Source: Podarcis tiliguerta (lineage: Eukaryota). From it: 64,000 nucleotides of DNA. The notes beneath the pieces are model-generated. The model did not search any database. It saw only the letters and a program-made list of their open reading frames with translations, and was not told the origin of the DNA. The stretch lies in NCBI GenBank assembly GCA_965153285.1, contig OZ229110.1; one strand, given 5' to 3'. Shown one piece after another: positions 1,556 to 64,000 of the stretch. Both the position numbers and the translations under genes were made by a program. Within the stretch, counting starts at the first letter, position 1. Each line of letters opens with the position of its first letter.

Positions 1556-2063
1556 ACCGTGTAAGGTTCCTCCTTCCAGTTCTCTCCGACCTCTTCTCCC
1601 GATTTGGATCTTACAACCACTGGAGTAAGTTATTTATTTTAGTTTTGCATTTTGCCTGACAAGTAATTGCTGTACTTTCCACTGATGTGATGCCAGATTT
1701 TAATTAAGTCTGACGAAGGAGGATTGCTTTGGATTGATCTGGAGATGCTGCTGCAGAAATGGCGATAAGATAAGACGCTTCTGCTGGAGTTCATTTCGAA
1801 CCCTCCCTGAAATTTGTGCTGCGGCTCCCAGCCTTTCAAGTTCTTGCTGAAGGTTACTCCAGGGTGTTGGAGCCCATGCCAGGAGTTCACATTGCCGATA
1901 ATCTGTATAGCCTGCATCACAAATCAGCTTTAACGAGCAGATAACCGTATTCTTCGGCAGCTCCCGACACACTGGTTTTTTTGCCAGCTCACATTAGGTT
2001 GTATTTCTATTTTTATTACCTTTTAATACCTTTTAGCACTGCTATTTTAAAAGACTCATAACG

Positions 2064-19536: not shown

Positions 19537-21985
19537 TTATCTTGTGGGCTGGAGGCTTGGTGTAAAGAAAAGTGCATAATTCGTCAAGGGCAAGATGTGG
19601 AATCCTTGACGCTTCAATGTCTGTTTGCTAGGCTGGTTGTCTGCCAAAACCGTAGTATACAGGGGGAACCCAGATGCGTGCAACTTCACAGCTGTTGCCC
19701 TTGTCACAGCTGCCACACAGCCTTGACCTCGGTACTGAGGGAGGGTGTAGCCATGTGTCAAACAACCCATTTGATCAGTAAGGCACCAGGAAACCAGCTG
19801 GTCTTCTTTGTCCAGGAGGCAAGCACTAGGGAAGTTGTGGATCAGGCTGTCCAGATAGCGCAGGCTCCGATCATTGCGTCCCCAGTTTTCATTGAGCAGA
19901 GCTGAATGAGAGGAGTTTAGGCTGCCGAAGTGGAAGTGGCCACTTCTGTACCTGAAATGCAAAGAGAGGCAGTGATGGCGGTTGAGCAGACTGAAAGCAT
20001 CCCTTAGGCTTAAAAAGTATTTTGTCACTATCCCCCGGAACAAAGGAACAGGAAGTTGCAAGAGAAACTCAGGAAGTGACCCTGTGACTTTCTCCTCCTG
20101 TTTTGTGGGCGGGACTAACACAGGACATAGCAATCAGATGTGGAGCTTTGTGTTGGGTTACAATTCACTGCTTACTGATTATGAGGAGGAATGTTTTGAG
20201 AATTCTGATGAAAATAGAAGCAGAAATTGCTGGTGTTCACCTAGTCAGCCCTTTTTCAGAACAGAATACAACCCAAAGAATACTGGATATTTGCTGATGT
20301 TATTTTCAGTCCACAAGTAATATGCAATGATATTGTTAAGAGTTGCAGAGGAGAGCTGAGGCCCTCCTTTCCCCTGGACCTAGGAAGTGTTAAAATATAA
20401 GTCAGGCTAGCTTCCTGTGCTGACGTGATCACCTGGCCATTAAGAGAACAAAGGATTAAGAGGCTTGGTGTGAGATGATAAATGGGTAGGGGCCCCCTCT
20501 CTCAACTAAATTTCAAAGGATGGTTGTATTTAAGGAAAGTGCAAGCCTTTAAATGGGAACTAAATTTAATTTCTCCCCCTCTCCAGTCAACAAACTCCCA
20601 TCATTTAGATACCCCAGGGTGAGAGTGCACTCACTAACCGGCTCTGACAGTAGGCAGATGGGTCAGGATGCAAGATTGTCTGGTAGAAGTATGGCTTAAG
20701 ATTGACACGTCTGGATTCTGCAATATCTCTGAGAGCTTCATATAAACCATATTGGAGCCCTGCACACAATGAAAATGAGATGTCAACCTGGGGGTGAGCA
20801 ATTATATTTTCTAATGCTCTGTGTCTGCACCTCTCTTGCTATTGTATGATTATAGTGTTGTGTGCCAGCCAATCTTTGAGCAGTGCGAGATTCCAGGGGT
20901 TCCAGGCGATTACCCAGGGTTGGTGTTTCCTTTGCAATGAGGGACAGCAGAGACTGTGGTGTCTCTGTGGCATGTGGTTTATTTACACATATACACAACC
21001 TGAGCAGTGTTAACACCCCAAGAGGGACTTGTTTCCCCCATGGTCACAGCCTTCTATTCAAACAGAAATCAAACATTGCTCTCTCTCTCCCTCTCCCTCC
21101 CCCTCCCTCCCTCCCTCTCTCCCTCCCTCTCTCCCCCCAGCTTGCTAATGTGCTCACATCACTCTAACTCTCTGCTCTCAACTCAGCCTCTGCCCACCCA
21201 TTTTCTAACTACCCACCCATTTTCCATCTCACACAGAGCCACTTCCTTGGTACCTCTCAATGTCTCATCACCTTACCAGGAAGCTAGTTTTGCTATTCCA
21301 GGAATGGAATAAGTAGAGCGTGAGGAGCTTTACCTTGAAGCTGAAAGGCCTTTCCCCAGTCAATGGCTTCTGCATTTTCCAACAGTGTTCGCCAGGCGTC
21401 TACATCCCAGTAGAAAGCAGTATGAAAGTTGGTGTAGTAATCCTGCTTATCTTTTACCACCTGCAGAACGTGGCACAGTCATTTGGCTATTGACAGGGCG
21501 CAGGTAGCGGGGGTTGGTTGGGTCTTATTAACGACGGAGAGCAGGAGCAAGAGAAAGGCAAAGGAGGCAGGAACAGGCCCAGCGCCACCACGGAGTGCGT
21601 CTCCAGCCTCAGAAGCTATTGTCTCTTGGGCTTTTTCTCACAGGTTCAGGGGACGGGTTATGGGAGAATTCTTACCTCCTTACGTGGGCGGGTAAGGACA
21701 ACTTTAAACTCCGGCCAAGAGTCCACCACCACTTCGTGCTGAGCTGGATTTCTACGGTTGATGTGCATCACAGCTCCGTTGGCCTGCCAAGGAAAGGAGG
21801 GGAGTTAGCTAGAGGAAAAATCCATGTTGCTCCATGAGAAAATGGTAGGAATTGCCATTTGTTAAATTGATGGGGAAAGGGGACGGCAGTAGAGGAGCGA
21901 GAATTACCGGAAGAGCCTGGGGCTGGTGCCGTTGCAGCACAGTCTCCAGCAGCTTCAACTTGGAGGGGCAGGTCAGGATCTGCAT
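19537..21985 (-). CDS. GLYATL3-like N-acyltransferase, copy B (282 aa); exons 21985-21908, 21783-21676, 21460-21334, 20759-20639, 19951-19537
   Basis: Exons of 78/108/127/121/415 nt in frame; [33 protein letters not shown]. Confidence 0.9.
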
Positions 21986-24392: not shown

Positions 24393-27300
24393 CTAAGTTG
24401 AAGAATGTATGCAGATGTGACACAATTCAGATAATCTCTGGGAGCCCATATAGTCCAGAAAATTCTGCGTTTGGACATTATTCAAGGCAGTATGGCCATA
24501 TACAGGGTACCCTGCCGCATAGATTTGCATGGACAGTGCCCTCATCACTATAGCTATGTAGCCCCTTCGGCGGTGGGATGGAAGGGTGTAGCCATGTATT
24601 AGTGCACCAAGAGGGTCCATGATGCCCCAGCTGATAGGATGACCATTGCTGTCCAGGATGCAGATACTGGGGAAGCACTTCACCATGTTGTCCAGGAACC
24701 GTCGACTTTGTTCGTTGCCTCCATGGGGCCATGTTTCATTTAGGAGGTCAACATGGGAGCTTTTCAAGGTGGAAATTGTGAAGCTGGGGTCTAGCCTGGA
24801 AGAAAAGACAGACAAGAACAAAATAGACAGAGATGTTGGAAGAGCCCAGGCACCACCTTTTTGGCTCAGATCATCTAGTCCAACACATGTTAACACTGGC
24901 CAGCAACCTGAGTAAGTCGCAAGCAGGAAACCATTTTGCTTTTGCACACATGGGCTGCTTTATGGTGTCAACATAGCCATTAATAGACAAAACATCTTTA
25001 GGAAACTTTGCTGTGCCAGCCAGGAGAAGGCAGACTTGGAAAGAGTGAATGCAAGGTTTGACCATCGTATTTTGGCTATGGAGATTCTCCAACTGGAAGC
25101 ATCACAGGTTAACCAGTGCCTCAAGCAGAAAGGAAGAAAGGGGGGAGCAAGGTGGACACTTACTGGCGCTGGGGCATTTTGTCTGGGTTAGGGTTCAGGT
25201 AGGTGAAGTGGGGAGTTGCAGTCAGATGAATTTTCTTGGCGGCAGCAGCATCTTTAGAGACGTCATATATCCCATTCTGGTTCCCTGTAGAATAGTAAAA
25301 TATTCAACAATGAAGAGAAAGATATTGTGTGTGTGATTTGAGGATAGGGCAAGAAGTTTTTCAGTGCATCAGGACCACAGTAGGGGGCAAAATGTTAAAG
25401 CCCCCTACCTGTCAGATGTGCAGGTGGATGCTCGTGAGTAACCAGGCAAGACTCTGACCTTTCTTTTTCAGGTTTTATTGGTGAAAACTATTTACAGTAC
25501 ATAAAGACACATTCTAAAAGGGTGTTGAATGTCAATAAGATCAACTAAAGCCCTGGTTAAAAAGGAACGTTTTTGCCTTGTGCCTAAAGGTGTATAATGA
25601 TGGTGCCAGCGAACTTCCCTGGGGAGAGAATTCCATAGACAAGGAGCCACTACAATGAAGGCCCGTTCTCGTGTTGCGATGTGATGCCATTGCTGATTTG
25701 TGTGAATGTCACTCATGCCTAGTTTGGGCCTAAGGTGTAGTTACACCTTCTCTGCCTCTGCAGTCCTGAACAACAAGGAGCAAGGAATACTGACCATTTC
25801 CCCATCCCGCAGTCTGTATGTGGGATAGATATGATGAAAAGGGATTGGAATAGCCATAATGAGCACATGATAATTGTGGATTGGGTTGGCTTCAGTCTAA
25901 TCCAGGGTATAGCCCTAGAAATCAAATAAAAATATATTCAAATGTTACCACACTGCTTAGCTACCTTTTATTTGCCATTTAAAAATTCACAGCCAAGGTG
26001 CGAAAAGACAGTTAGAAGGGACCACATAGGTAATCTAGTCCAACTGCCTGCAACGCAGGGATCTTTTGCCCAATATGGAGCTTTGAACTCGTGACCCTGA
26101 GATTAAGAGTTTCATGCTCTACCAACTGAGCTATCCCAAGTTTATTATCTTATTTTTTCTATGCTTGACTATTGCAGTTCTCTTCTTTCTATTTCCTCGG
26201 TGTCCTGTTCACCCAGACTTCTTAATTCAGCTGCCTGTGTGGTTCCTCCCATGTTTTGGTTTACCTACATTTCCTTTTGGTTACACTCCAGTGACTTCCT
26301 TTTCGTTAAAGGATCTCTTTGAAGTGATCACATACAGTATTTCCACTCTTTAGCTCTTTCTCTTTTCTTCTTTTGCCTTCCTCTCATTTCCACTCACTGA
26401 TATTCTTCAGCTCCTGGCTAAAACTCCACGTACTCCTTGATTTCACAATTCCAGCTTTTCTCTCTCTTGCTTCACATTTCCTCCGGAAACCATCATGGCC
26501 TCCCAATATTCACATTGCTCTTTCCTTGCAAATGTTGAAGTAGCAGGTGAAAATGCCTCCCTCTTCCCAAATCTTTAAGCACTACTTTCTCTATCCTCTT
26601 CACGTTCCTTTTGAGTCCCTCCCTCCTTCTCAATGGGCTTCCGCTTTTTGACTTCATTTCTCAACAGCACTTAAGTGTGTGAGACACTTTATCAGAGGCA
26701 TCACATCTCGTTTTCGGAAGTGTCACTTTGCCACTGCCACCACCATCCACTGGCAGAGAAGAGGCACAGGTATTGGTACTGAATTTGGGTGAGAGCTTGC
26801 TGGTGGGGGTGAGATCTCACTCCACAAGATTTCGTGCAGTTTTGACAACATCTCACTGGAAATCAGCACTGGGGCAAGCGAGGGTACCACCTTCGGGCAT
26901 CCATTGCCTCACTCCGCCTGATGGCTGTGATGGTCCTGCAATTTATATTCAGTGGAGGCTGGTCTTTCAGGGTGAATGGGGCCGGCTTCATCAAGCGCTA
27001 TCTGCCCACAGCCAGCTCCTCCCACCTGCTTTTTATTTTCATCCAATCTGGGGGGGGGGCACTTCTATCAGCTTCCTCCTCCTCAGTCTCAGTTTTGCCT
27101 CTTGTAGAAGGCAAATGCTGCCTATTATGGGTTCTGGATCCACCTATGTTGGTCTCCCTGCCTTCTGCCCTACCAGTTCCAATGAGAACCAGCAACCACA
27201 GTTTACATTAATTACAGTAATATCATTTTAAAGGGGGGAGGGGACTCTCTCATCTCATAACTTTTCCCTTAGTAAGAACTGCCTTTTACCATAGAGACGA

Positions 27301-33675: not shown

Positions 33676-35082
33676 CTAACCCTGAAGTGCACAGTTCTGG
33701 GAGCGAAAGGTTGCAGTGTGCCATCCTGTGGGCTGGAGGCTTGGTGTAAAGAAAAGCGCATACTTTCTCAAGGGCAAGATGTGGAATCCTTGACGCTCCA
33801 ATGCCTGTCTGCTAGGCTGGTTGTCTGCCAAAACCCCACCAAACAGGGGGAACCCACATGCGTGCAACTTCACAGCTGTTGCCCTTGTCACAGCTGCCAC
33901 ACAGCCTTGTCCTCGGTACTGAGGGAGGGTGTAGCCATGCGCCAAACTTCCCACTGGATCACTAAGGCACCAGGAAACCAGCTGGTCTTCTTTGTCCAGG
34001 AGGCAAGCACTAGGGAAGTTGTGGATCAGGCTGTCCAGATAGCGCAGGCTCCAATCATTGCGCCCAATACTCCAGTTTTCATTGAGCAGAGCTGAATGAG
34101 AGGAATTTAGGCTGCCGAAGTGGAAGAGGCCACTTCTGTACCTGAAATGCAAAGAGAGGCAGTGATTGTCATGAGACAAAGGTTCTTGAGAGCAGAAGAA
34201 GCAGTAAGGCCTACAAGGCCTACACAATCATTCAAGCCTAAGCCTGCTAACTGTTAACAGCAAACTGCTAAGTCACTGTGACTCGTCACTCATCTTGGGT
34301 GAAGACTCATTCTCTCTGTAAAAGTAGCCAGCCTCTCTATGGGCCCTCAGTCAGAGAGCTGTATGGATTGTGTATGGAGTAGTCTGCAGAACAGTGCTGC
34401 TGTTGTTGCCATGTAAAGCTGAGGCAGACAGAGTGGCTCCAGGACTCTAGTGAATCAGTAACTAAGACTGTGCCTCTGGGTTGGGTTACAATTCACTGCT
34501 TACTGATTATGAGGAGGAATGTTTGAGAATTCTGATGAAAATAGAAGCAGAAATTGCTGGGGTTCACCTAGTCAGCCCTTTTCCAGAACAGAAAACAGTC
34601 CAATGAATACTGAATATTTGCTGTTGTTATTTTTGGTCCACAAATAATATGCACTCACTAACCGGCTCTGACAGTAGGCAGATGGGTCAGGATGCAGGAA
34701 TGTCTGGTAGACGTATGGCTTAAGATTGACACGTCTGGACTCCGCAATCTCTCTGGCAGCTTCATATAAGCCATCTTGGTGCCCTGCACACAATGAAAAT
34801 GAGATGTCAACCTGGGGGTGAGCAATTATATTTTTTAATGCTCTGTGTCTGCACCTCTCTTGCTATTGTATGATTATAGTGTTGTGTGCCAGCCCAGTCT
34901 TTGAGCGGTGCGAGATTCCAGGGGTTCCAGGCGATTACCCAGGGTTGGTGTTTCCTTTGGAATGAGGGACAGCAGAGACTGTGGTGTCTCTGTGGCATGT
35001 GGTTTATTTACACATATACACAACCTGAGCAGTATTAACACCCCATGGTCACAGCCTTCTATTCAAACAGAAATCAAACATT

Positions 35083-40784: not shown

Positions 40785-43700
40785 CTAAACTGAAGAATGT
40801 ATGCAGAGATGACACAATTCAGATAATCTTTGGAAGCCCATATATTCCAGCAAATTCTGCATTTGGACATTATTCAAGGCAGCATGGCCATATACAGGGC
40901 ACCCTGCCACATGGCTTTTCATGGACAGTGCCCTCAACACTATAGCTAAGTAGCCCCTTCGGCGGTGGGATGGAAGGGTGTAGCCATGTATTTGTGCACC
41001 AAGAGGATCTGTGATGCCCCAGCTGATAGGATGGCCATTGCTGTCCAGGATGCAGATATTGGGGAAGCATTTCACTATGTTGTCCAGGTACCGTCGGCTT
41101 TGTTCGTTGCCTCCATGGTGCCATGTTTCATTTAGGATGTCAACATGGGAGCTTTTCAAGGTGGAAATTGTGAAGCTGGGATCTAGCCTGGAAGAAAAGA
41201 CAGACAAGAACAATATAGACAGAGATGTTGGAAGAGCCCAGGAACCACCTTTTTGGCTCAGATCATCTAGTCCAACACATGTTAACACTGGCCAGCAACC
41301 TGAGTAAGTCGCAAGCAGGAAACCATTTTGCTTTTGCACACATGGGCTGCTTTATGGTGTCAACATAGCCATTAATAGACAAAACATCTTTAGGAAACTT
41401 GTAGTGCCACCTTTGGTGCTTTGCTGTGCCAGCCAGGAGAAGGCAGACTTTGAAAGAGTGAATGCAAGGTTTGACCATTTTCTCCAAATGGAAGCACCAC
41501 AGGTTAAGCAGTGCCTCAAGCAGAAAGGAAGCAAGGGGGGAGCAAGGTGGACACTTACTGGCGCTGGGGCATTTTGTCTGGGTTAGGGTTCAGGTAGGTG
41601 AAGTGGGGAGTCGCAGTCAGATGAATTTTCTTGGTGGCAGCAGCATCTTTAGAGACATCATAGATCCCATTCTGGTACCCTGTAAAATAGTAAAATATTC
41701 AACAACAAAGAGAAGGATATATGTGTATGTTTTTTGAGGATAGGGCAAGAAGTTGTTCAGTGCATCAGGACCACAGTAGGAGGCAAAATGTTAAAGCCCA
41801 TCTTCCAATTTGACACCTGATATCGACATTTTAAAAGCATTCATATTATTATTATTACTATTATTATTGGGGCAAGCGAGGGTACCACCTTCGGGCATCC
41901 ATTGCCTCACTCCGCCTGATGGCTGTGATGGTCCTGCAATTTATATTCAGTGGAGGCTGGTCTTTCAGGGTGAATGGGGCCTGCTTCTTCAAGCGCTATC
42001 TGCCCACAGCCAGCTCCTCCCACCTGCTTTTTACTTTCATCCAATCTGGGGGGGGGGGCACTTCTATCAGCTTCCTCCTCCTCAGTCTCAGTTTTGCCTC
42101 TTGTAGAAGGCAAATGCAGCCTATTATGGGTTCTGGATCCACCTATGTTGGTCTCCCTGCCTTCTGCCCTACCAGTTCCAATGAGAACCAGCCACCACAG
42201 TTTGCATTAATGACAGTAATGTCATTTTAAAAGGGGGGGGGGACTCTCTCATCTCATAACTTTTCCCTTAGAAAGAATGTCTTCTACCAAAGAGACGAAA
42301 GGTTTGCTTCCAGTTGACAGCATCTGTGTCCAGCAACAGTCTCCGGTACACATCAAGATCCCAGTAAAAGGCTGCATATATGTTTTTATATAAATCAGTA
42401 TTGTCTGTATCGGCCTAAAAGAGAGCGAGATGGAACTCATTAGGTTAGCCTCCCTGCCATCTCCTTCTATAACCAGTTCTTCTCAGGTTGCCAACTTTAT
42501 TCTGGTAAAATTCCTGTGCTTTTAACTGCCTCCTGACACTTTAACAGATAAAACTTTCCCTGATGTTGAGATGAAATGATGGGTGAAGTTTGACCTGCTC
42601 TAATGCCAAAGGTGCCCTCCTAACAGGGTTGTCTTTAGCAGATGCAGCGCCAGGGTGCAAATATCCTCCCAGTGCCCCCAAATTACCACGGATGGTGGGG
42701 GCGGGGGAAGTGCGCACTGCCAGCCTTGGGGGGGGGGGCTAACTCTCCCACACGCTACTGCGGGAGAGCAATCCCCACAGAGGCTGTGTACCCGCCAGCC
42801 ATATTGATGGCGGGGCACAGCTTCCATCCCAAGCCTCTGCGGGCACAGGTGGCAGGTGTGCAGGGAAAGGGGAGGCCGCCGGCTAAACCACACAGCTCCC
42901 CCACTTGCTGGGGCGGCCCTGAGAGGCCGGTGCCCTGGTGCAATGCACCACTAAGGTGAAAGGTGGCTCTGCTTCCTAAACAAAAGCCAACATCCCCTTT
43001 CAGTTTGAGCCTGGCTTAGAGGAAGTCCGAGCACAGAACACGCAGCATTTCCTGCTGACATCCCATAAAGCACCTCCCACAAAATCCCCAAAGACTACTA
43101 CCTCTGTCCGTGGACGCGTCAGGACCACTTTGCAATCTGGCCAAGAATCCACAATCACCTCATGGCCCACTGTGTTTCCATGGTTTATGTTCATGACTGC
43201 ACCATAGACCTGTCAAAAGTCATAGGATGTCAGAATTGCTGCAGTTGAAGGAGGCAGCCTGGGAGAAATGGGTGGGGTCTGGTCAGAGAAAAAGTGGTGT
43301 GGTGTGTCAGGCTTGTATCTGCTGCATGCCTTGAGTGGGGTGTCCTGATCTGAGTGAGCACAAGGGACAGGAGAATCTGTCAATTTCCCTTGATGTTACA
43401 GCTGAACGAGGCAGCCTAAGAAAAACGTTTGAGGAGAGAATCGGTGGTGTGGCCCCAAATTCAGATGTTGATCTGCTGCATGAATCCCCACTGTTAGTGA
43501 CTAGCCCTTGAATGGTATTACCTTGACTGAGGACTTCCTGTTTACCAGCTGATTAACAAAATCTCGGAGCCCACAAGGCCATGTCACATATTACACGTAT
43601 TTCTCACGAATCCTACCTCTCTGCTGAGCATATCAACATGATACATACATTTTCAAGCACCTGCTTGTTGAACGTAAAAACTTAAGGCATGCACCTAAAA

Positions 43701-47299: not shown

Positions 47300-48020
47300 G
47301 AGTCTGCTTCCATAGAACGGGAGATGAGTGCTTGCTTCAGGGGAAGCTTCTGCCGGCTGCAAGCGTCTCCCATCAGGTGGTGCTGAAGGAGATCGCGGAG
47401 GAGCAGGGATCGAGGGAGAGGACCACCGCCGCTGGAGAAGAGGAAACTGCTCTCTAGTTCGGTGATTTTGGGAAAAACTGTCTCCAGGTAAAGCATTTAT
47501 TTTCTGCTCAGGTTCCCCACTCCTTGCCTAGCGCAGCAGGCAAGTTGCTATGGCGGCGTTTCCACGTTTGGACGCCCAGCTCCTTTCTTGGTCCGTCTCC
47601 AGATCAGCGTTTTGGCCCGGACATGCCCGGCTTCCTCCGCTGTCGCCGCCTTGAACGCAAAGCGAAAGCAGCGCTGCCATTGGTCGATCCGTGCGAAAAC
47701 AACAAGCGGCTGCTCCGGGGAGACCCAGAGCGGCTCCGAGGGAGAGGGGGAATCGGGAGCGGTTAGTGCCCGCAGTCCTCGCATCGCCCCCAAGAGACAT
47801 TGCGGGGGAGCACCGACAGCCCCCGGCGCAGCTCCTGGTAAGGACGCAGCTGCTTCTAGAGATCTCGCGGAGCCGTTTTTCCGGGGTGACAGGAGGAGAG
47901 AGACCCTCCCTGCCCTTCCGCGTTTGGGCATTAGGGGAGGGAACTCAAGGGGGCGACTCGAAAAGGCTGCGGGGGGGGGGGCGTCTGGAAGGGAAGGGGC
48001 CAAAATCTGGAACGCGGCTG
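47300..48020 (+). promoter_or_regulatory. CpG island promoter and probable non-coding first exon of POLD4
   Basis: Dense CpG; inverted CCAAT (ATTGG) near 47660; donor CTG|gtaagg after 47837 and matching acceptor ctcctcag before 48616. Confidence 0.7.
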
Positions 48021-48668
48021 CTATAAAAGGAACAAGAGGGATCTATCTGTTCAGGGGGGTGAGAGGGAGGGGATCATTTTGATCCCCAGGCCTCTTGGGT
48101 GTGGGGGAGAATAACCAGTGGTTACAGCAGGAACCGGGGAATCTGTTCTCGAGGTCTGGATGAGGAGAGGGCCGAGTCGTGCATTGCTTTGATGGCTTCA
48201 GGAGGAAGCAGAGTCCAGGATGGGGACCGCAAGGGATTCTGTCGCACTTCTTGACAGAGGAATAGCCTCCTGCTCAGGGAAAGCACTTTGCCCTGCCTTG
48301 GAGTCGGGCTGAGAATTTTTCAGTGTCAACACACAGTCCTGGAAAATGCAAAGGCATTTATAGTGGAGGGTCTCTGACCATGCACAGAATATACTTCCTT
48401 CTCCTTTACATAAACTTAGGCTCTTTAATGTGTTTGGAGGCAAAGAACTTCCACATGGGAGAAGGCCATCAGCTAGGAGAGTCCAGACGCCTTTTTGCAG
48501 GGTTTTTTCTCCCAGAAATAAAGTCGTTTTGACTGGTAGCTGGTATTAGGACAGCAGGTTTGGAGATTGAAGGTCCTAGTCAGCAGCTTGTCTAACAGTC
48601 TCTGCTTCTCCTCAGCTCCTTGTTTGGAGCAACCTGTTAATGCTCTGTGAGCGTTGCCACATGGAACC

Positions 48669-51600
48669 ATGGGCAGGAAACGGCTAATCACAGACTCCTT
48701 CCAAGTGGTGAAGAAGAGGAAAAGAGACAGTAAGGAAACAAAGAAGGCTCAGAGCCCACTCCATGGTGAGTATTGCTAGGAAGGGATGCGTGAATTTCAG
48801 CAGCACCTGGTGCGACACAAAAATTCAGCACCCCTCACCTCTCTCACTTCATTCTAAATCATACTTTCAGCATTCCCTGCAGCACTCCCAAGGCTCCGTG
48901 CCCAGTGCAACCAATTTGGTCGTGCTCCCTTAAATCCTTTTTCTTCTTTGGCGATCTCTCGTAGCCGAGTAAGATTGTCTTCCAAGAACACAATCTTAAC
49001 AGTGAGTCCGTAAGCGACTGTGCGGCCAATTCTGGATCCACACATCCTTCCACAGTGGAAACATAGGCTTCTAGGTGGGAGTTGATCATGGTGAGGGTTT
49101 GCCAAATGTGTCTTCCTCTTATTGTGTTTTTCCCTTTCATCCTGAGTTCAAGCATCTTCAAAGTTCATGACACCTTTGGTAAAGGCTGTTCTCCAAGTGG
49201 AGCGCTCACAGGCCAGTGTTTCCTAATTGTCAGTTTTTATACGTTTTTAAAAATTTGCCTTGAGGGAGTCTTTAAACCTCTTTTGTTGATCACCAGCATT
49301 ACGCTTTCCATTTTAAGTTCAGAATAGAGTAGTTGCTTTGGAAGATGATAATCAGGCATCCGCACATGACCAGTCCAACATAGTTGATGCTGAAGAATCA
49401 TTGCTTCAGCACTGGTGATCTTTGCTTCTTCCAGTACACCGGCATTAGTTCACCTGTCTTCCCAAGTGATGTGTCAAATTTTTTGGAGATACTGTTACCA
49501 TTTGCCGATCGCCATGGGAGTTTTATGGGTTTGTGTTTGGTATGGGTTTTTGGAAGATGCTTGTACGTGAATTTGTTTCATGTGTGTAGTTCAGTGCACG
49601 CTGACCAAAGCACAGTCTTCGCAGTAAGGCTCTATCTTATCTGCCTTCACAGCTGATGTAACATGCCACTTGTTATCTGCCACCTGCTCTGTTGTTGAGG
49701 ACTTCTTGGATCATTCTTTGTCTAGCTCCTCCCCTTTGACCTTGCCACCTTGGGTGACCCTGTTGGGAGTACAAGACTCCCGACGGCTTCGCTCACAAGG
49801 GTCATAGGCATGTGCAAGCCCACTCACCACAAGGTGACACCTCTGCTACCAATAGGTAGATAATCTGAATGGGGGGAAAGGGTGAAAATCCAGCAGCTTT
49901 AGGTGGGGAGTAGATGGATGCCCATTGGAGTGGCCCTTGAGATTTGCAATACATCAGTTCTTGCAAACTGTTTCCCTGCACGGTCTTATTTTGGTCGTCT
50001 CCTAGGTTGTTTGTTGGATCTGCACATAACTCAATACCACAGTTATGCAAGTGAGGGTTAATCAGTAATAGGCTTGCCACTTGCTTAGCTAGCAAGTTGC
50101 TATAGTACAGTGGTGATGAACTGTTGCACAGGATTGCTGTGAAAGTGAAGTATTTGAAAAATCATTTAGCAGGAAGTAAAATTATATGAAACATATACTC
50201 CCAAAAGGTTGAGAACCCTCCACAGAAGAGGAGCATTCTCAATGAGCAATGGATTAATTATGTTAGTGTTGTTTCCTTCAGTCAGCACATGTTGTGTGTG
50301 TTCATATTTACATGAGATCGAAGTGTGGGTGAAGAGATGCCAAAAAAACACAGGCAAAGTTATACGGGTTGTAGAGCAAGCCAGAGATAACTAATGTAAT
50401 GGTGTTGGCTAAAGAATTATGTTAACCCTTTCCTGCACACTCATTTCATACAAGGGCTCTCCATAATGCAGTGATAATCATCCATTTCTCTCTGATCAGA
50501 CGCAGTGACAGTCCAGGAAGTCCAAGATGCTGCACATCCAGACCAGCTGGAGACACTAAAGCAATTTGACCTCAGCTGGCAGTACGGCCCCTGTACAGGT
50601 AAGAACTTCCAATCATGCTGCTACTACAACTGAGCCAAAGTACACATCACTGCAATGAAAGCATAGGTTTTCCCTGCCTCCCTCCATGCACAATTTTATA
50701 TATACAGTGGTGCCCCGCAAGACGAATGCCTCGGAAGACGAAAAACTCGCAAGACAAAAGAGTTTTCCGTTTTCTGAGGTGCTTCGCAAGACGGATTTCC
50801 CTATGGGCTTGCTTCGCAAGACGAAACGTCTTGCGCCTTTTTTTTTAAAACCGCCAATGCATTCCTATGGGAAACCGTCAATATGCATTGGTGCTTCGCA
50901 AGACGAAAAAACTCGCAGAACGAATTAATTTCGTCTTGTGGGGCACCACTGTACCTCCATGGGGCAGGGACCAGTCTCCCTATGCTCTATTAAAGTGTTA
51001 CATTATAATTAGTGGGAGCATACCAGGAAAAGGGGACTCCTAGTTAATTCTCAAATTCATCTAGCGGCAATAGACTTGCAAGGAAGGTGGTTGAAGATCG
51101 CTGGTGTTGAAGAGGCTACTTTGACCTTTTTCCCCCTGACAGGAATCACCCGTTTACAGCGCTGGGAGAGGGCAGAGTTACTGGGTCTCAACCCCCCTGT
51201 TATGGTGCGGGAATTGCTAGAGAAGCACAACAAGGATCCCCTCGTTACATACAGGTTAGTATGGAAAAGCTGCTCTGTCCTTCTCAGGCACTGGATGGAA
51301 GCATCTATTCTAGGGTAATGAGATCTGGAAGAGGAAGACTATTGAGGTTGGGCTTGGTGGTGCAAGGCCATGGCAGTGCTAAGCAGGTCACATGATAATT
51401 TGGCTAAGCTCTGGGCATCTTTTATTCACAACTGTATGAATGAGGAGTAACTCTATTGCAAGAGGAAATACACAAAAAGAACTGGGCAAATGGAAGTATG
51501 AGCTCAGCAAAGGTCAAGTAAAATCCATAACTCACCTATTGGGGATTAGAATAGGAAAGGGATCAGTAGCCAAGAACAAGCAGTTCTCCTTTATTTGCAG

Positions 51601-53776: not shown

Positions 53777-55147
53777 TTTCTCTCGTGTATTTCTGGACAC
53801 ATAAGTATTAGAGTATCTTGTACGCAAGCAGCTAGAACAATTTCCAATCATCAAAGGCTTTCATCTGGTAATGAAAGATAAAGCTATAGAGCTTACCCTT
53901 CAGGAATGAAAAGGATCTATGCACCGCCACAGTTCCTGCTAGTTTCAATGGTTGGACCTGTAAACTGGGGGAGGGTGGGGTGGGGGGATAGAGGTGTGAC
54001 ATTTGGATTCTCTGTTATCAGGTGCCAAAATGTCCAGAGCTACTTCAGATATTACTCAAAACTCTGGAAAGGGTAAAAAAGCCTAGTTTAGTCAGCTAGG
54101 CTCCTGTTCCTGTAGACATGAGCTTTATGACTAACTTGGGAGTTTGGAATGAGGTATTGCCATTTGCAGAAGGTTATGCAATCATACAGTTACAGTGGTG
54201 GAGACAGAACAGGTTGCCAGTGGTAAGGTGGTGTCTTCCCTATCACACAACCTCCTTGTGGTCAGATGTCAAGAGTTGTTGTACATTAGCTGGGAGCCTA
54301 GAACAAAGTTTGGCAAACATAGTACAGGATGTGTTGTGCATAAATAAACTCCAGATTCCATGCCAAGCTAATATGTAACTTGAGAAAAGAAACATGAGCA
54401 TACGGGATGGAGAATGGCAGGCATAGGCTATGCAGTACACTGAAGCTACAATCCTCAGAGCAAAGAGTATCATCACACCATCAAATACTGAGCTGAAATC
54501 AGATTCCACCCCCTGTAAAAATTCAGATGATCTACAGAAAATACACAGTCCTACAAAAGGTCTGAGCTAAAATGAAAGATGGGAGAAATTGATCCTCTAC
54601 ACCCCAGAGAGGGTTCATGGGTATGGTTGCATAGGTAAAATCTGCCATCAACATATACTGCATATGGGGGGGGGGGCACTTAGCCACAAACACTCAAAGC
54701 CACGAATCATACAGAGGAAGTATCGCTCCACACATTGAGAAGGCCTGCAAGAATCACTTTCACTGCCCTCTGGTGGGAAAACACAAGAAATGGAGGCCAC
54801 ACTAATTCTTATGCGGCTAATCTTTCACCCCAGTTCTGAAAGAGGCTAAAGCCATAGCTGGCATCCTACATCTGGCAATTAAATCTGCATTCTGGCTCTG
54901 TGGCTTGCCTTATCCCCCACATCCCCCACTCTACTACCTGAAGTTCTGCAAAGAGAGAGTATTAAGAGGTGTCCAGCACCAAAATGAATACTCAGAGATT
55001 CTCTGCTCTGGCAATCTAAACCCCAATACTGTCTAACATAAGCTTCTTTGTTGCATGGCAAATGAATTCCTGAGATAGAGGTCCCTGCTGCTGGCTTTCC
55101 TGGTAGTGTGTGAGGATGTCCATATAGTACTGGACCTGGTCTTCATC

Positions 55148-58100
55148 CTAGCTGTTGCTCTTGTAGTGTGGAGGGCCAGCTACCGCTTGCAGGGCCTGTT
55201 CACGCAACTGGGTTGGCCGAGTCAGTATGGATGTGATCTTGCTTAGCTGCAGGAGGGAGCCAGAGATAGCTGTGGGACAAAAAAACCAAACCAGTAACAA
55301 TGAACTCAATGCAGACACTTTCTCCTAATTCCTAGAAAGAGAATCCTTTCAAGTCTTCTGGAAGTATCAGGAATAGAAGACTTGTGAGAACAGCTGGCAT
55401 CTCCAGCTAGATTTTTTCCTAAACACCACAAAGCCAGGTAACTCCTAAGGTCACACCTGGGCCTTGCTTTAAGGCAGTGCCCAATAATCTTGCTTCAGGG
55501 CAAGGAAAGGATCATAGTGATGGGCAATTGTGTCTAGTAACTTAGCAAGGCATGAAAAGGGAATAGGGAATGTGGAGTATAATTGGTAAGCCATGGTTCC
55601 ACTCTCTTAGTTATGTGTGAATGTAAGAGTACTTCAAGCAGGAGTAGGATGGGTGAATGATACACAAGCACATGCTAGATTTCAGAGCAGAAGGTAGGCA
55701 AGGATCATTGAAAGCCATGGGGGGGAAAGAGATGGGTCAGTGAAGGGAAAGACATTTCTAGATTTCCCTGTTGATCCATACCAGGGCGCAAGATGGGCAG
55801 GGTGCAGTGCTGCTCCAACCAGCTCAACACTGAATCGCAGAATTCCTTGACGTTGCCTGTGCTCACTGTCCTGGTGTAGCTCTCAAAGAGTGGCTTAATC
55901 ACCATGCTGAACTGCAGGTTGGAAGAGGTTAAGGAGACTATGCAGCCAAGTCTCCCTGCTCCCCTTAAGCACCCAGCAGGCCACTGATGCCATGCCAAAT
56001 ACCTCCCCTTGCTTTCTTTCTTGTGCCCTAACCTGTCCCATCCCATCCCATCCCACATGCTCAGTGATGGATACAAGCCAGAAGCGCCAGTCCTGGAGGG
56101 TGCGCTTGCGCACATACTCTTCGTAGAGTTGAGAAGCCTGATCTGACTGTGGTGGCAGCACAGGAGCTCCCGTAGGTGGAAGCTGGCGCTGAAAGTCGCT
56201 GCAAGGAAGAGAAAAGCCACAACTTGTTGACAGGAGTTCCCCTCTCACCTTTTAACTTTTATCCCTGATCCAATGAAAACCCCTTAAGCCAGCTCCGCAA
56301 CTCACTCAATGGCAGTGCTCAGCTCTTTGATTTCCCCACGTAGTCTTTCAACTGTCTCCTGAGCTTGTCGGCGCTCTTGCTGCAGTCTTTCCACATGTGC
56401 CGCACTTTTCTGCAGAAGCATCGCTTTGCTGAACTGGGGAGGTGAGGGGGTGGAGTAAAGGCGTAAAATGGATTGGGAGGGCAAAGACCACAAGAATGGC
56501 TCCAGCAGGTACACAAAGCAAATTGGGGGGACTGGACAAACAGCAGAGAATATGTGCCCTTCCACCCTCTGGTACAGTGGGGGATGCGTACCTTAGTGCT
56601 GCTTTGATCAGGTCCTGTCAACACCAGAGTGGCAAGAGTGTTGAAGCCGGAGCTGATGAGCCTACGGCGGGCGTAGTCAGCCGAGGTAAGGGTTGATCTG
56701 CGACTTCCCTGCAAGAGCCAATCAAGCCATGATTTGAGACACTGCCAGGCACCTACCCCTTTGGCTATCGTCTTTGAGAAAGGATGTCTTCTCCCACAAT
56801 ACTCAAGCCAACAAGATGGGGTACAGTGGTGTGGGTATCCTTATTACCTTGGCAGTACAGCATTTGTCCACTTCCTGGGGTTTGCAGAGAGTGTTGTCCT
56901 CAGCTCTCTCCTTGGTTTTGGCACCTGAAATAATCCCAAAAATACTGGGGTAGGTGAGTTCCTCTTAAGGTGTGTATTCAATTTCTACTTTGGCACGGCA
57001 TATAGACCAATCCAGTGAAAGCGGATGAGATATTGCTAAGAAGAGAGGCCGAGTGACTTTGCACCCTCCTGAGCCAGCTTACCAGTGTCAGGGGAAGCAG
57101 CAGCAGAGGCAAGTGGAGGAGACTTCACCGTTGCCGAGAATGAGTTCGGCATATTCACAGGGGGCTTTGGGACGCCACACACCTGTGGGAGAGGAAAAGC
57201 AGGGTTGAAAGAAATAGAGAGCAGCCAAACAGAAAGATAGAAAAATACGCCGCCTGTCAACTCCAAGGAGGCAAAAAGCAGAACACAGATAGGAGGCCTC
57301 GCAGAAGGAAGGTGGCAGAGGAGAGCATCCTTACCTGCACAGAGTTCATGACTGGAGTGAGGGGCAGTGGGGCAGGACCTAGAGATGAAAGAGATGTTCT
57401 TATTTTCCCAGCCTCTATGTATTAACCCCCAATGCATGTACAAAACTTGGCTGGCTGAAGCAACATCACTCACTCCTTGTAACTACACAGCTTCAGTTTA
57501 GCTGCTCACCAGTAGACCAAGTTTTTGAATGTGGCAGAATTTATTTAATGAAAAGGAGTATGCTGCTTTATGAAATCCCACCAACCACAACTGAAAATAC
57601 AGTTCGGGCTAATGATCTCTACTTAAATGCATGGCACCCTACCCAACAGAGAGGCCAATGAGCATTCTTGCCTCAGGGATCCCTTCCAAAACATACCTAG
57701 GCCTGGTTTCCCCATAACCATTAGCGTCTCATAAAATTCCTGCATGTACCACCAGCCAATCTGACACCAACTGTTTGGTACCCACTTTGCCATCAGACAC
57801 ACGAGGTTAGGAATTCTGGACCTTTATGTTTTAAATGGGGTAGAGAGGAAAGTTTCATAGTTACAGATTCTCTTCATAATGCTTGCACATTAGAAGACTC
57901 TACAGTTCTTGACAACTTCCCCCATTCAAAAAAGCTACAAGGCACAAGAGCCTTCTTCTGAATTGGGTCAAGAAAATCTGTGCTCACTTGTAGATTTAAG
58001 AGAAATTAAAATATAACTTTAAAAAGCTAGTAAATATGCAGAGTTATATTAATGAGCTGTCATTTCACTTCTACTAATGAGTTGAAGGTTTTCTGTTTAA

Positions 58101-61100
58101 CTATGAAGCATTTGGACGAATGTTGACATTTGTAGTTTTGCTTGATTTACCTGGCTCAAATTGCTGGCTGCATCAAAACAAAAAGCTTAACTACACTCCA
58201 GAGAAGCAAGAAGGGGATCAATGCAGGAATCTGGGCATAGAGGACGTTTTCTTTCCCTTTCCAAACAGCAACTCCCAGACATCTTTACACATATGTATAG
58301 TTGCAAGTAAGATTGCCACCTTAAATCCGTCTCCAATACCTGTGGACTAACCATTTTGCTATTCTACAGACTAGTCAGTACATAGTTTTGACACACAATT
58401 TCTGCAAGGCTAAACCCTAAATCCACTGAAGGAGATACAGGCACTGTTACGTAATGCCTATCAGCTCAAGTCAGATACAGTGGTACCTTGGTTTTTGAAT
58501 GTCTCCGTTGACAAACATTTCAGTTTTTGAATGCCGGAAACCCGAAAATAAATGCTTCAGTTTTCAAACACGCTTCAGAAGTCGAACATGTCACTCGGCT
58601 CCTGTACTGAGTTTTCCATACTCCGTTCCATACTGAGTTTTCGGTTTTCGAACGTTTCAGAACTCAAACGGTCTTCTGGAATGGATTACATTCGAAAATC
58701 GAGGCACCACTGTATATCATTTTTAAATTCTGCAGTAACACAAAAAACTATCTCCCTGGACCACATTTTATTTTTCCAGTACGGAAAAATGCTTTTGCTT
58801 CCAGTGTTTCCCAAGTATGAAGCTAAACTCCAGCTTCAGATAATTATATCAAAATAAACACTAATAATGCACGCAGTTGTTTAAATTAGGGATTCCAAAA
58901 GTTGATCCTGGTGAGATTTGCTTGAGAAAACAACCACCAAAAAGAAAGGAGAATTCTGCAGTATGACTTAATACTCCAAATGGATCTAGAGAAGCATTGT
59001 AGTCTAGGTCAGCAATGCCTCAATTTCCCCTGCAGAGAGCCTGTCCTTGCAGGGACATACCAGTTGCAAGCAGGCAGGGGAGCGGAGCACCGGGAAGGGC
59101 TGGCTGCTGGCTAGAGGAGGGTGCTGGAGCAATCCGTTGCAGGTGTCTGCATTTCCCATCCTTGGGTGGAGGAGCAGAGACTGGCGCAGCAAAAGTGTCC
59201 CGAAATACAGACGGAGAATTTGTTTCTGATCCTGTGTGCGTGATGACAGAGAAGACCAAAGTGGTTTGAGGCTGCATGCGCAAGATGGGAGAGACAGGCG
59301 GCGGGCTGATCCTCAGTGGGGAGGTGGGGAAGAATGGCAGGAAGGTCTGCTGTCCATTCAAAGGTACAGGAGGCTCCACATCCAGTGAGATGGGAATGGG
59401 ATTGAGAGAGTCTCCAGGCGGTGGGAGATCCTTGGTCCCAGGGGCAATGAGAGGTGTATCTGGGTTGCACTGGTTCAAAGCACTAGCATCTGTTACTGCA
59501 GGAGCCTAAGAGGGGGGAGAAGAGAGTGCAAATCAAACACAACTCCTGAGTCTAGGCTGGAGATGGCTGCACTGAAAATCATACAAGTGGGAGAACTCCC
59601 ACTGCTCAGTTTTTTTTTGCAATGCTGAGAAAAGGCTATTGCCTTTCCAAAATCAAAATCAAGCACAGACCAGTATCTGCAATAAGCATCAGGGGCTGCA
59701 GAAGCCCAAGGAGTTAGTAAGCTATCAGATAAATTTATTATCCTTACCTGGATCATGGGCTGAGAACGACAGGAAGTGATGAATTCTGTGAAAAGAAAGC
59801 AAAGATTTAAAAGGCTGGGAGGAGATAAAGAGCAACTGGTAGAAGATAACTGGCTGGTGTGTCTGAATCAATTTAGCAAGGAATCATCAGGATTTCACTA
59901 TACAGGTAGTATGCTGGCTGTTTGGTCGTAATAATAAACATTCATTCATTCACATCCACCATACAAGCAGACATCAATTAGTGGTTTCGAAGAAAGATGA
60001 GACCTAAAATCCAGGATATGTCAACTGGTAGAGAAACTCAAGTCAAGAACAGGAGCAATCTGCAGGTGGGGACTGCTGATTTCAGAGTTATGTGACGGAG
60101 TGGCAGGAATGAGATGAAATAGGCTCTATATGTAGATGCTATACTTGCAAGTAGAAATTTTGAGATGACAAACTCGTAAGTTTAAGATTTTTCAAATTAA
60201 GAATTCATACAAGATTAATTTGCCTACTTTATTCTTCCTGTGAAAAGGGGATATACAGTGGCTCTGAAGAATTTGTCCTGGCTGATTCAGAAAATGGGAT
60301 AGGGGACAAACAATATATAAAGCACAGTATGCATGTGATTATATGGAGAATGAGTCTTCTATTAAAGCATTGGATGCCCAAAAGAGGATTTTTATGTGCA
60401 TGCTGACTGATTTAAATAATGTCTAGACTTACCAGGACGTATCATGTTTGCTCAGCAGCATTCTGCTCTGGCCTTGGGTGAACTAGAATTTCATCAATGT
60501 CAGGTTGGAAATAGTCTCCTCTCACCAGTGATAGCTTTCAGACCACTTTGGTGACCCAGACTCAGATGTTATTTACTCTTGAGGTCACAAGTTAATCTTT
60601 CAAAACTGGTGATTAACTTGTGGGCTTAAAATAATAATAACTCACGTTTCTATTTGATTTTTGGGCCTTGATGACACACTTTTCATATTTTGTTCTGTTT
60701 TCTCCCTAACAGTGAGTTTAGTAAATATGCAAGCTGCAATTCTGAGGAATCCAAGGGCTCTTTTACAGATAAGCATTGAAGGGAATTGCTGCTGATCAGG
60801 AGATCCTAGCAGCATGTACCCAGTAGCATCTATAAACAAACACATTTCTTTTAAGTGTGTACAGTATGGATACATAATTTAAACACAGTCTGAAGTGGTC
60901 TTAAGAAGCCATACAAAGTGCTTCAGAGGATGTCTTTCAGCTTTGAGATGCACCACCTTACCACTAAGTACAGCCATAAAACCTCTGCTGTTACCTTGAA
61001 TGGGGTCCAAGTCCATAAACTCCTCCCCAAAGATGGGGTGCAGTTGGGTCAGGGTGGGCTGGATCATATCCGCATTTCCCTGGTGAGCTGAAGACACAAA

Positions 61101-63094
61101 ATGAGAAATAATATCACTCGCTTGCTACTTTGTTCCATAGCAATTGTTCTCTGGTTCACAAGCAAGGGACTGGCTCTCACATGGAGATACTTCAAAAGCT
61201 CTCTCCACCCTTTAGAGGCATCTGTACCAGCCTGTGGGGACAGTGGAGAAAACTTAAAGGGTTTCTTGGCAGAAAGGGACAGATCCAGAGATAGATGGAA
61301 TGAGCACAAAGCAAGGCCTCTCACCAAGGCCACGGAGGTTGGGGCCACCATAAGGGTTGCGGCTAGAAATGAAGGTGTCCAGAAGTGCATCCAGGTCATG
61401 CAAGGGGTCGAGGTCCATGGGGCATGCATCTGTTCCATCCGTTTTCAGCTCTGCCCTTGGAACATCATCAGCTACTTCCTATCCAGAATGGGAGAGAAAG
61501 AGCTGTGAACTCCAACTTTAGGCAAACTCAAATGAGGGACTGGAATACTGAATGGCTGCAGACAACTCCCAAGCTTTTTTAATTCCACCCTTTGCCATGG
61601 GGAAAGGGGAATCTGGAGGGTGCAGTATAGGAACAAGGCATTAAAATAGCACCTGAGAAGAACCATAGACGGGTTTATCCATCTTCTTTGAAGCCTATAA
61701 CAAAATGCACAGAATGTTTAGGATTAGGCCACTGAAAGTACTACAATTACAATACTTAGCTAGAGGAAATCCATAGGTAGCTAAATAAAATCCTATCTGG
61801 CTTATTGCTGCCCTGGACACATTTGGGAGGAAGGGCTAGGTATAATGTACTATTATTATTACTACTACGGCTACAACAACAATGAACACATCAGGCCTCA
61901 GCCAAGCCATTGCAGACCACAGTAATCACACAGGGATAGCTGGGTGACCAGTGTGTGTCTTTGTGGAAATGAGAGAGAGGGCAAGAGAATGAGAGCCTTT
62001 GGCAGCTGCGGAAATGAGTCTATAGGCCAAGGCACCCATCAGAGTAAGATAGAAACATAGCCTTGCCAGTCTAGTACCAGATCACCTCATAACCACCAGA
62101 TGCAGTCTATGGTAGCCTGGCAAGAAGCATCTAGAAAATCCACCTTCTTACAATGGAGTTCCAAGGTGCTTCTGGATTGGCTACCTGATTTCCTTGGTTG
62201 ACACTAAAAAGGACTGTATGAGCTTGGGTGGAACATGTCATCTAGGGGTGAAGGGGAGCTATACGAAGTACAACACATCTTGCTGGAGAAGACACTTACC
62301 TGGGTATAGGAAAACAACCTCCATTTGTGATATTCCCTGATGACAACCCCAACTTGGCGTTTCCAGTACTTTCCTTCCATGATGACAGCCTGCCAAACAA
62401 AGGTGCAGCCAGGGGTCACATACTGAAATGCATAGTCTGTCTTCTTTGTACGTTCTTAAGTAAGAAAGGCCCAAATAACCTTTGCTCACCTCAGGCTTGC
62501 GGTGCACATCTACATCACTGCACTCTAGTGGGGTCACAAAACTGCACACTGGGTTCTGCCGCTTCTCCACATCTGCATCCAGAATGAAATAGCAGGAAAG
62601 GGGCTGTAATCTGCACTATAGCTTTAAGCAGGACCAAACAGAGAAAATACTTGCTGGCTGGCAGTCGCTCCCATTTCAGCATCCACTAAATAGGGCAGTA
62701 GAGCTGATTTAATTGCTTAAATCCATAAGCAATTAATATGTGACTTTTGCTAGCATAAAGCTTTGCAAACTTGCAATACATAATTCTGTGTGAAGCAATC
62801 TCCTTGGCTGAGGAAGTCATGGAAAACAAACATGTGCAGGGATGGAGGAAGAACCCATTTTTTGTGGATTTATACACAGAATTTGGTGGTTCCCACCTAA
62901 TCTGCCCATATCGGATCACCATTTATATGGTTGGGATGTGTTTTTTGTTGTTGTTGTTTTTTAAATATCTTTTTCCAGGCTACTTACACTGCAGATACCA
63001 GGCCCTCCAGATGGCATTATTGAGTCGAATCTTGTCACGCTGTAGCAGTTTCAGCCCTTTGAAGGTTTTCCATTTGGGAGAGACAAGTTTCTCA
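55148..63094 (-). CDS. Mondo-family bHLH-ZIP protein (MLXIP/MLXIPL-like, probable third paralog), 5' partial, ~630 aa visible; exons 63094-62988, 62572-62490, 62389-62300, 61694-61653, 61478-61325, 61087-60995, 59785-59748, 59505-59061, 57378-57335, 57182-57083, 56924-56848, 56708-56592, 56433-56306, 56198-56075, 55911-55782, 55269-55148
   Basis: KLVSPKWKTFKGLKL..RDKIRLNNAIWRAWY, PVCSFVTPL, EGKYWKR..REYHKWR, GNADMIQP, HLH-ZIP, and RTLQDWRFWLFSMVIKPLFESY...WLEQHCTLPILRP (WMC/DCD); all 16 exons join in one frame (the small middle exons are less certain). Confidence 0.9.
55912..56074 (-). other. U12-type (minor spliceosome) GT-AG intron
   Basis: 5' splice site GTATCCAT; branch site TCCTTAAC shortly before the CAG acceptor. 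Confidence 0.8.
58478..58712. mobile_element. Tc1/mariner (Tigger-like) MITE
   Basis: CAGTGGTACCT...AGGCACCACTG flanked by TA. Confidence 0.85.
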
Positions 63095-64000
63095 CTACAA
63101 ATGAGAAAGCCAAAAAACCACCTCTTGTAATACCAAGTATATCTGGCTTTCAAGGGGAAACAGGGCCAGGCAACAACCCAAAGAAGAAGGCGGCAGCTCA
63201 AAACACACTGAACAGGAGCATCTCTTTAATAAGCTTGACTATTCTATAGCCACAGTTTATTACTAATCTGTGCCAATAAAACTAAATTCTGCACTCAAAA
63301 CTATAAACTGTAAACTACTCAGATGTCTACAAATGTTCACCTTTTGTACAGATTGACCCAATATGCCTGCTTTATTCTAAACCTCTCACTGGATGTTGAT
63401 TCCTCCTCAACTTTTTAGAGCAAACTGTGAGAGAAGGAGAAAAATGAACAGGTTAGAAGTAGCATATGCTGATAAGTGTAGAACATAATTATAGACCATA
63501 TATTGGGATAAGAAGCTGTGTTGATTACAGAAGCTCTGCCCACAGAACTACATGGCTCTCTATGTATACTGCCTTCCTGTTTTTCTGATGAAGCTCCTCA
63601 ACAAAGGACAAAATCTTGCTTTTAAAAAGTATGCTATAGATACCAGCCTTGGGGTGGAATTCCATGTGGCAATTATGACAGAAGAAAAAATAGCCCTGGC
63701 TTTAGGTGGCAGATCTGGAAATACCCCCCACTCCCAGCCTTACTGTAAGGGGTTTTCCCCATTCATTATTGTTGCAGAGCCCCATCTACGAAGAGTCAGT
63801 GAGTGCTGGACAACTATTTCCAGGACAGAACCTAGGGTAATTCAATTATTCTGAAGAAATGCAGCATAATTTAAAACACATCCAGTTAAATGATTTGTGT
63901 TTTGCTATTAATAACCAATTTGTTAGTGAGTGTATCTCTCTACAACAGAAAAATATAGTATTGACTTGAGTAATCCAAATGATTAAAAACATCTTGGAAG

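Follow-up and report, generated by a model that had tools for sequence, protein, structure and literature searches.

What becomes of a sugar-sensing transcription factor once the residues with which its family reads DNA have been replaced? The question is raised by a single exon on the minus strand of a 64,000-nucleotide stretch of the lizard Podarcis tiliguerta (contig OZ229110.1, assembly GCA_965153285.1), a stretch to which we refer as the window.

56592..56708, minus strand: basic helix-loop-helix (bHLH) exon of a Mondo-family gene, 117 nt, phase 0/0, with the basic region, helix 1 and most of the loop

This exon reads L-T-S-A-D-Y-A-R-R, the counterpart in MondoA and ChREBP being H-I-S-A-E-Q-K-R-R. 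In the Myc/Max/Mlx field the glucose-sensing arm is described as two Mondo paralogs plus MLX, with no extra copies in the Mondo family (PMC3177325, PMC4766361, PMC11900861). We find that the exon is part of a third gnathostome Mondo paralog, here called M3, whose lacertid copy is intact and transcribed. M3 is separate from MondoA (MLXIP) and ChREBP (MLXIPL) and is a branch so far undescribed in the literature searched. Judging from its sequence, M3 probably either has a different way of binding DNA or does no more than dampen its relatives. An earlier reading of the window, the original prediction, had proposed an Id-like sink for MLX, acting as a natural dominant-negative, or else an altered-specificity arm of the network.

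A transcribed exon in a third Mondo gene

Translation of the minus strand at 56592-56708 agrees exactly with the exon sequence quoted in the original prediction. The exon is open in frame 1 only, with stops in both other frames, and is bordered by an AG acceptor and a GT donor; the window is free of N runs. Evidence for transcription comes from three transcript-contig runs and one stranded raw RNA-seq run of a close relative at about 2% DNA divergence, placed over window positions 54300-59600. RNA junctions from 56707/8 to 56847/8 and from 56433 to 56592 fall on the exon borders; contigs from as many as three runs carry them, as do 7 and 2 raw reads, respectively, and both have CT..AC on the plus strand, that is GT..AG on the minus strand. 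Nearly all first mates of the stranded run lie on the plus strand, which in most stranded libraries indicates RNA from the minus strand. Every exon downstream of the bHLH exon is likewise matched by RNA junctions, and the helix 2, zipper and DCD/WMC exons are in frame and joined in RNA. Some Gnomon/GenBank models of snake M3 (Candoia, Crotalus; P0174, P0176, P0200) skip exactly this 117-nt basic/helix-1 exon. Because its phase is 0/0, skipping keeps the frame and gives an M3 without basic region or helix 1; no such skipping junction is among those listed for the RNA of the lacertid relative.

The protein of Podarcis raffonei (P0167, 759 aa) served in searches as the full-length stand-in for the window's M3 protein. 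By tblastn its residues 129-759 fall on 16 in-frame exons from 63096 to 55148, with a within-exon identity of mostly 90-100% (96-100% in the exons of MCR III-V), and the exons for residues 1-128, including MCR I-II, lie beyond the window end at 64000. M3 has the marks of a Mondo-family protein: an N-terminus with MCR I-V, a bHLH-leucine zipper and a C-terminal DCD/WMC region. P0167 matches the solved N-terminal region of ChREBP, 5f74_B (E 7e-60), as well as the alpha-2 peptides 4gnt and 9gcp. The expectation of an intact gene, with helix 2, zipper and WMC/DCD kept, exons in frame and normal splice sites, is thus borne out by the P0167 mapping, with its 16 in-frame exons, and by the RNA junctions of spliced mRNA in the close relative.

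Which Mondo gene is it? Queried against a library of 1.84 billion proteins, the DCD/WMC exon alone (window 55771-55911, minus strand) recovered 214 Mondo-family proteins at E up to 0.001, the best full-length matches coming from Phrynocephalus ("hypothetical protein"), Chelonia ("MLX-interacting protein, partial") and the king vulture (a model of low quality). The Phrynocephalus protein in turn retrieved a distinct set of Gnomon "MLX-interacting protein-like" models at 566 bits or more, followed after a gap by true MondoA at about 470 bits. This set holds three caecilians, two salamanders, ostrich, emu, a crocodile, turtles, tuatara and many squamates. Mammals, frogs and teleosts were all absent from the M3 score range in the protein library searches. 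With lungfish included, M3 occurs in lungfish, caecilians, salamanders, tuatara, squamates, turtles, crocodile and ratites, and the only name that RefSeq has for it is "MLX-interacting protein-like".

In a tree of 59 rows under a mixture model, MondoA, ChREBP and M3 form three gnathostome clades with a Shimodaira-Hasegawa-like approximate likelihood ratio test (SH-aLRT) value of 100 each, and the branching inside M3 mirrors the species tree. The same three clades appear in a 29-row tree (LG+G4) that adds shark, chimaera and coelacanth MondoA, the SH-aLRT values being 99-100 over both trees. The lungfish protein P0229 has a Protopterus "MLX-interacting protein-like" as its nearest named relative, and moving it into MondoA is rejected by the approximately unbiased (AU) test (29 rows, LG+G4; log-likelihood difference 45, p-AU 0.0004). 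Since M3 lies inside vertebrate Mondo but in a third clade, it is a family member that is the ortholog of neither MondoA nor ChREBP. A divergent ChREBP ortholog is ruled out, as canonical ChREBP coexists in the same species: M3, canonical MondoA and canonical ChREBP stand together in Carettochelys (turtle), Microcaecilia (caecilian) and Struthio (ostrich), and Rhineura (squamate) has M3 plus ChREBP. A recent MondoA duplicate is ruled out as well, because the MondoA clade takes in the sharks and leaves M3 outside. When a third Mondo paralog was looked for in the literature, nothing relevant came back, the matches to "MondoC" being author names.

One could still suspect a decaying, functionless copy, or an artefact of annotation or assembly. 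Indeed, M3 evolves several-fold faster than MondoA, judging from branch lengths in the 59-row tree, the searches turned up no copy in mammals, frogs and most birds, and the king vulture model is flagged as low quality and disrupted. Set against this are intact open reading frames in at least 38 species, ranging between amphibians and ratites, a gene tree in agreement with the species tree, a spliced mRNA, and the same residue states recurring in independent assemblies. The domains are constrained too. Across 38 tetrapod M3 proteins, the set on which all conservation figures below are based, the mean major-residue frequency is 0.80 in the MCR region, 0.82-0.83 in helices 1 and 2, 0.80 in the zipper and 0.82 in the DCD, compared with 0.66 in the linker. 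Compared with the relative's RNA, the exons show eight listed differences, of which five are synonymous and three nonsynonymous, for a crude ratio of nonsynonymous to synonymous rates (dN/dS) of about 0.2 over very few sites; those in the bHLH exon are one synonymous Tyr codon and one change from Leu to Val, Val being the Podarcis state. The original prediction had itself named an unexpressed gene with dN/dS near 1 as grounds for dropping it, and what we see is a transcribed gene in which five of eight differences, a small sample, are synonymous. We regard decay or artefact as largely refuted already, and the chance that it accounts for M3 as very slight.

The sole neognath bird among the matches in the M3 clade is the king vulture Sarcoramphus papa (P0025, "LOW QUALITY"). 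In its disrupted model, recognisable M3 pieces of the N-terminus, basic region and DCD are separated by scrambled stretches. M3 may be decaying in Neognathae while it is intact in ostrich and emu.

The basic region of M3 and what it may read

The basic region aligns without gaps when anchored on S-A-x-x-x-R-R and helix 1. Within the same species, MondoA and ChREBP read R-R-x-x-H-I-S-A-E-Q-K-R-R-F-N-I and M3 reads ...[T/S]-x-A-D-x-A-R-R-M-x-I. In the window's M3, Leu thus stands for His, Asp for Glu and Tyr-Ala for Gln-Lys, and Arg-Arg is kept, in line with the substitutions originally predicted. Conservation by column is as follows.

Glu position: Asp in 37 of 38 (97%), Asn in emu
Arg-Arg pair: 100%
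Met after Arg-Arg: 89%, Arg in lacertids
Ile: 100%
His position: 63% Phe, five states in all
Five residues before the His position: conservation no higher than in the linker

Canonical orthologs, which would have pointed to a peculiarity of one individual or assembly, are therefore not what the clade holds, given Asp in 37 of 38. The original prediction had asked whether the substitutions are fixed in orthologs: Asp is, and the His position is free to vary, with its 63% Phe and five states. An assembly or individual artefact behind the odd basic region is ruled out by the same state across 38 tetrapod species in independent assemblies. By these frequencies, Asp and the following Met and Ile are under clear constraint.

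When did the change occur? The lungfish-type M3, P0229, retains both His and Glu, so the change dates to the tetrapod stem. It was there, after the lungfish split, that M3 lost Glu (now Asp), His and Gln-Lys, and it has kept this state since. The tetrapod M3 state is roughly 350 million years old. The Pfam HLH model aligns with the lungfish protein over profile positions 1-53 (40 bits), with P0167 only over 12-53 (23 bits; cut-off 20.7) and with the bHLH exon alone likewise only from position 12; in the lizard, then, the model no longer sees the basic region. M3 lacks the canonical class-B basic region of His, Glu and Arg.

The substitutions are not of equal weight. Glu is present in every tabulated motif variant of non-M3 Mondo proteins (about 300 sequences, invertebrates to mammals), and the His position also varies in MondoA, being Arg in ducks and geese and Leu in some teleosts. 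Because some MondoA vary there, the His change alone is weak evidence, and the exchange of Glu for Asp is the change unique to the M3 clade. Bird MondoA has peculiarities of its own: the neoavian form (P0233, P0246, P0258, P0260 and about 27 others) reads K-H-I-S-E-Q-K-R-R, with one residue fewer separating His from Glu than in the H-I-S-A-E spacing of ostrich and all other MondoA, and in the anseriform one, K-R-I-S-S-E, Arg occupies the His position. The basic regions of bird MondoA are thus non-canonical too.

The Glu in question, the basic region's position-9 residue, provides the strongest base contact and is present in every bHLH factor that binds the CA core (PMC8431614). In MAX the change E32K abolishes the distinction between E-box and scrambled DNA (10.64898/2026.04.01.715400). 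The premise of the original prediction that this Glu is critical for E-box reading is backed by both sources. Could Asp nonetheless suffice? M3 would then be a third, fast-evolving activator at carbohydrate response elements (ChoREs), Asp being adequate for Glu within a cooperative Mondo:MLX heterotetramer. Asp keeps the carboxylate and Arg-Arg is retained, the MLX loops make binding to ChoREs cooperative (PMC1761440), and Myc/Max-E32K shows that a heterodimer can bind DNA although Glu is defective in one of its arms (10.64898/2026.04.01.715400). Near-normal function of this kind seems improbable to us all the same: the Glu is present in every tabulated motif variant of the other Mondo proteins, which argues that Asp is not equivalent; Asp has never reverted among the tetrapod M3 proteins, though one base change would suffice; His, Gln and Lys were lost along with it, and Pfam HLH no longer aligns the basic region.

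The reading that we prefer, at a probability of roughly 0.45, is that M3 is an MLX partner without canonical half-site reading, a competitor of MondoA and ChREBP both for MLX and for sites. M3 would pair with MLX through the conserved HLH-zipper-DCD part, and the canonical contacts of Glu with the CA in a CACGTG-type half-site would be beyond its own arm. An arm without these contacts would make M3:MLX a poor ChoRE binder without normal specificity. As the sensor module of M3 is intact, the competition would probably depend on glucose, and the net effect would be that of a glucose-regulated attenuator of MondoA and ChREBP and not of a standard activator. Our searches of the PDB found no solved bHLHZ structure of Mondo or MLX, and the bHLH exon had no meaningful match among PDB sequences.

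Several points weigh against the attenuator. The change from Glu to Asp is the mildest possible one, and the count of synonymous and nonsynonymous differences rests on just eight listed differences. Moreover, since Myc/Max-E32K still binds DNA, one defective arm need not abolish binding. Finally, Arg-Arg, the fixed Asp and the retention of GRACE/MCR V would fit a protein that still works on DNA, which favours altered specificity. M3:MLX would in that case be a DNA-binding activator with its own glucose-responsive gene set, MLX reading a CAC half-site and M3 another. In bHLH-PAS proteins there is a precedent, Ala or Ile at position 9 going with non-canonical half-sites (PMC8431614). The C-terminal half of the M3 basic region is constrained like the helices (Asp 97%, Arg-Arg 100%, Met 89%), at residues where a dead DNA-binding arm should drift, and the whole N-terminal sensor is kept, MCR V included. 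On the other hand, conservation is loose at the His position and throughout the N-terminal half of the basic region, and positive charge has been lost (Gln-Lys to x-Ala/Thr/Val), which resembles decay more than a new reading head. Nor is Asp in place of Glu known to be a recognition solution. We hold altered specificity to be a serious possibility, if a less probable one than the attenuator. Its more explicit form, in which M3:MLX would read a new asymmetric element made of the MLX CAC half-site and an M3 half-site recognised through the fixed Asp/Arg-Arg segment, is a tentative proposal that we think rather unlikely to be right.

What these residues do speak against is the Id-like sink in the form in which it was first put forward. 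With Arg-Arg invariant and Asp fixed, it seems that selection still acts on residual backbone contacts or on some non-canonical contact. A simple Id-type protein without basic region would fit M3 badly, because Arg-Arg is invariant, Asp has neither drifted nor reverted and MCR V is kept; Met and Ile are constrained as well, and a heterodimer with a defective Glu can bind DNA. Of the two roles that the original prediction had offered, the sink as stated gives way, and altered specificity is left at least as open as a sink.

The remaining exons and the neighbouring genes

The rest of the gene, from the stop codon up to MCR III, is made up of the following exons, which were placed with P0167 and, where RNA reaches, with junctions.

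55148..55269, minus strand: last coding exon with the stop codon (P0167 match); the 3' untranslated region extends below 54300, RNA depth reaching 54300
55782..55911, minus strand: DCD/WMC exon; RNA junctions 55911-56075 and 55269-55782
56075..56198, minus strand: exon in which the zipper ends and the DCD/WMC dimerisation region starts; P0167 match and RNA junctions
56306..56433, minus strand: helix 2 and leucine zipper exon; RNA junctions 56433-56592 and 56197-56306
56848..56924, minus strand: linker exon directly upstream of the bHLH exon; tblastn with P0167 and RNA junctions, upper border approximate (~3 nt)
57081..57185, minus strand: linker exon; tblastn and RNA, borders approximate (few nt)
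57333..57385, minus strand: small linker exon; tblastn and RNA, borders approximate
59059..59505, minus strand: large proline-rich central exon; RNA junction 57376-59059, contigs end at 59507
59750..59786, minus strand: small exon; tblastn, borders approximate
60996..61088, minus strand: MCR V exon with the GNADMIQP... element of the GRACE region; 31/31 identical to P0167 (tblastn)
61325..61478, minus strand: exon between MCR IV and MCR V; tblastn, lower border approximate
61653..61694, minus strand: small exon after MCR IV; tblastn
62300..62389, minus strand: second MCR IV exon (...EGKYWKR...REYHKWR...); tblastn, borders approximate, matching ChREBP 5f74_B through the ortholog
62487..62570, minus strand: first MCR IV exon; tblastn
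62989..63096, minus strand: MCR III exon with the 14-3-3/importin-binding alpha-2 helix, RDKIRLNNAIWRAWY; 36/36 identical to P0167, matching the ChREBP peptides 4gnt and 9gcp

In the exon at 62300-62389 and its orthologs, the KKRLRK-type basic cluster that forms part of the nuclear localisation signal of ChREBP and MondoA is replaced in M3 by a non-basic stretch. Loss of this cluster after MCR IV could bias M3 toward the cytoplasm. Within the long intron, RNA and contig depth spikes at 58550-58725 (up to 130) with many loose ends; the likely source is a repeat expressed at another place in the genome, outside the M3 mRNA.

The M3 gene adjoins POLD4, which lies on the plus strand, tail to tail with it, and whose last exon (51013-51315) matches Pfam PF04081. 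This position beside POLD4 differs from the neighbourhoods of human MLXIP and MLXIPL. A GC-rich stretch at about 47.5-48.1 kb is a candidate POLD4 promoter, the POLD4 region covering window positions 47500-51315 on the plus strand. Farther away, last exons of tandem glycine N-acyltransferase-like genes lie on the minus strand at 8346-8819, 19540-20133, 24396-24959, 33679-34227 and 40788-41351 (Pfam Gly_acyl_tr_C, Gly_acyl_tr_N). The block at 19.5-25 kb is seemingly repeated at 33.7-41.4 kb, which would make it a recent segmental duplication. A near-intact retroelement occupies 2037-7251 on the plus strand, with three long open reading frames (610, 375 and 753 aa) that look endonuclease- and reverse transcriptase-like by eye.

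M3 beside known systems

A conserved, expressed third ohnolog with a sugar sensor and a replaced DNA-reading Glu would be a modulator built into the glucose-sensing network; M3 might instead be a separate output channel of that network. An asymmetric element read by M3:MLX would imply a third glucose-responsive regulon in vertebrates from lungfish to ratites, lost in mammals, frogs and most birds. M3 is found in amphibians, reptiles and ratites, and the usual models lack it (mouse and zebrafish, and apparently frog and chicken); axolotl and Anolis carry it and would be tractable systems for its study. M3 also offers a natural experiment on the role of the position-9 Glu in a Mondo:MLX dimer.

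The closest comparison is with ChREBP and MondoA, which share with M3 the MCR I-V N-terminus, the bHLH-zipper, the DCD/WMC region and the exon layout around the bHLH. M3 is a sister-level clade to them within the vertebrate Mondo proteins and coexists with both. Unlike M3, they keep the Glu; M3 has Asp, has lost His and Gln-Lys and evolves faster.

Engineered proteins offer a further comparison. ChREBP R673A/R674G, in which the basic-region Arg-Arg is changed, is dominant negative and blocks the glucose response in hepatocytes, as does dominant-negative Mlx; like the latter, it resembles M3 in having intact dimerisation parts and a damaged basic region (PMC1761440). The engineered ChREBP destroys Arg-Arg, whereas M3 keeps that pair invariant and alters the base-reading Glu and His.

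With Id and Emc, M3 would share the idea of an HLH partner that dimerises without reading the E-box and titrates a common partner. Id proteins are small and have no basic region at all. M3, in contrast, is a 750-aa protein with sensor and activation-linked modules and a half-conserved basic region with its invariant Arg-Arg, and Arg-Arg, Met, Ile and Asp directly precede its helix 1.

Two further systems bear on the position-9 residue itself. HIF-1alpha, SIM and AHR, the partners of ARNT, resemble M3 in lacking the position-9 Glu while pairing with a canonical partner, and their dimer reads an asymmetric site (PMC8431614); they differ in having PAS domains, in belonging to another bHLH class and in carrying Ala or Ile instead of Asp. 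In MAX E32K the very same Glu is changed; the homodimer no longer discriminates E-boxes, and the heterodimer with a normal partner still binds (10.64898/2026.04.01.715400). There the change is a somatic or germline human variant to Lys, in the shared partner MAX; in M3 it is an anciently fixed Asp, in the specific partner.

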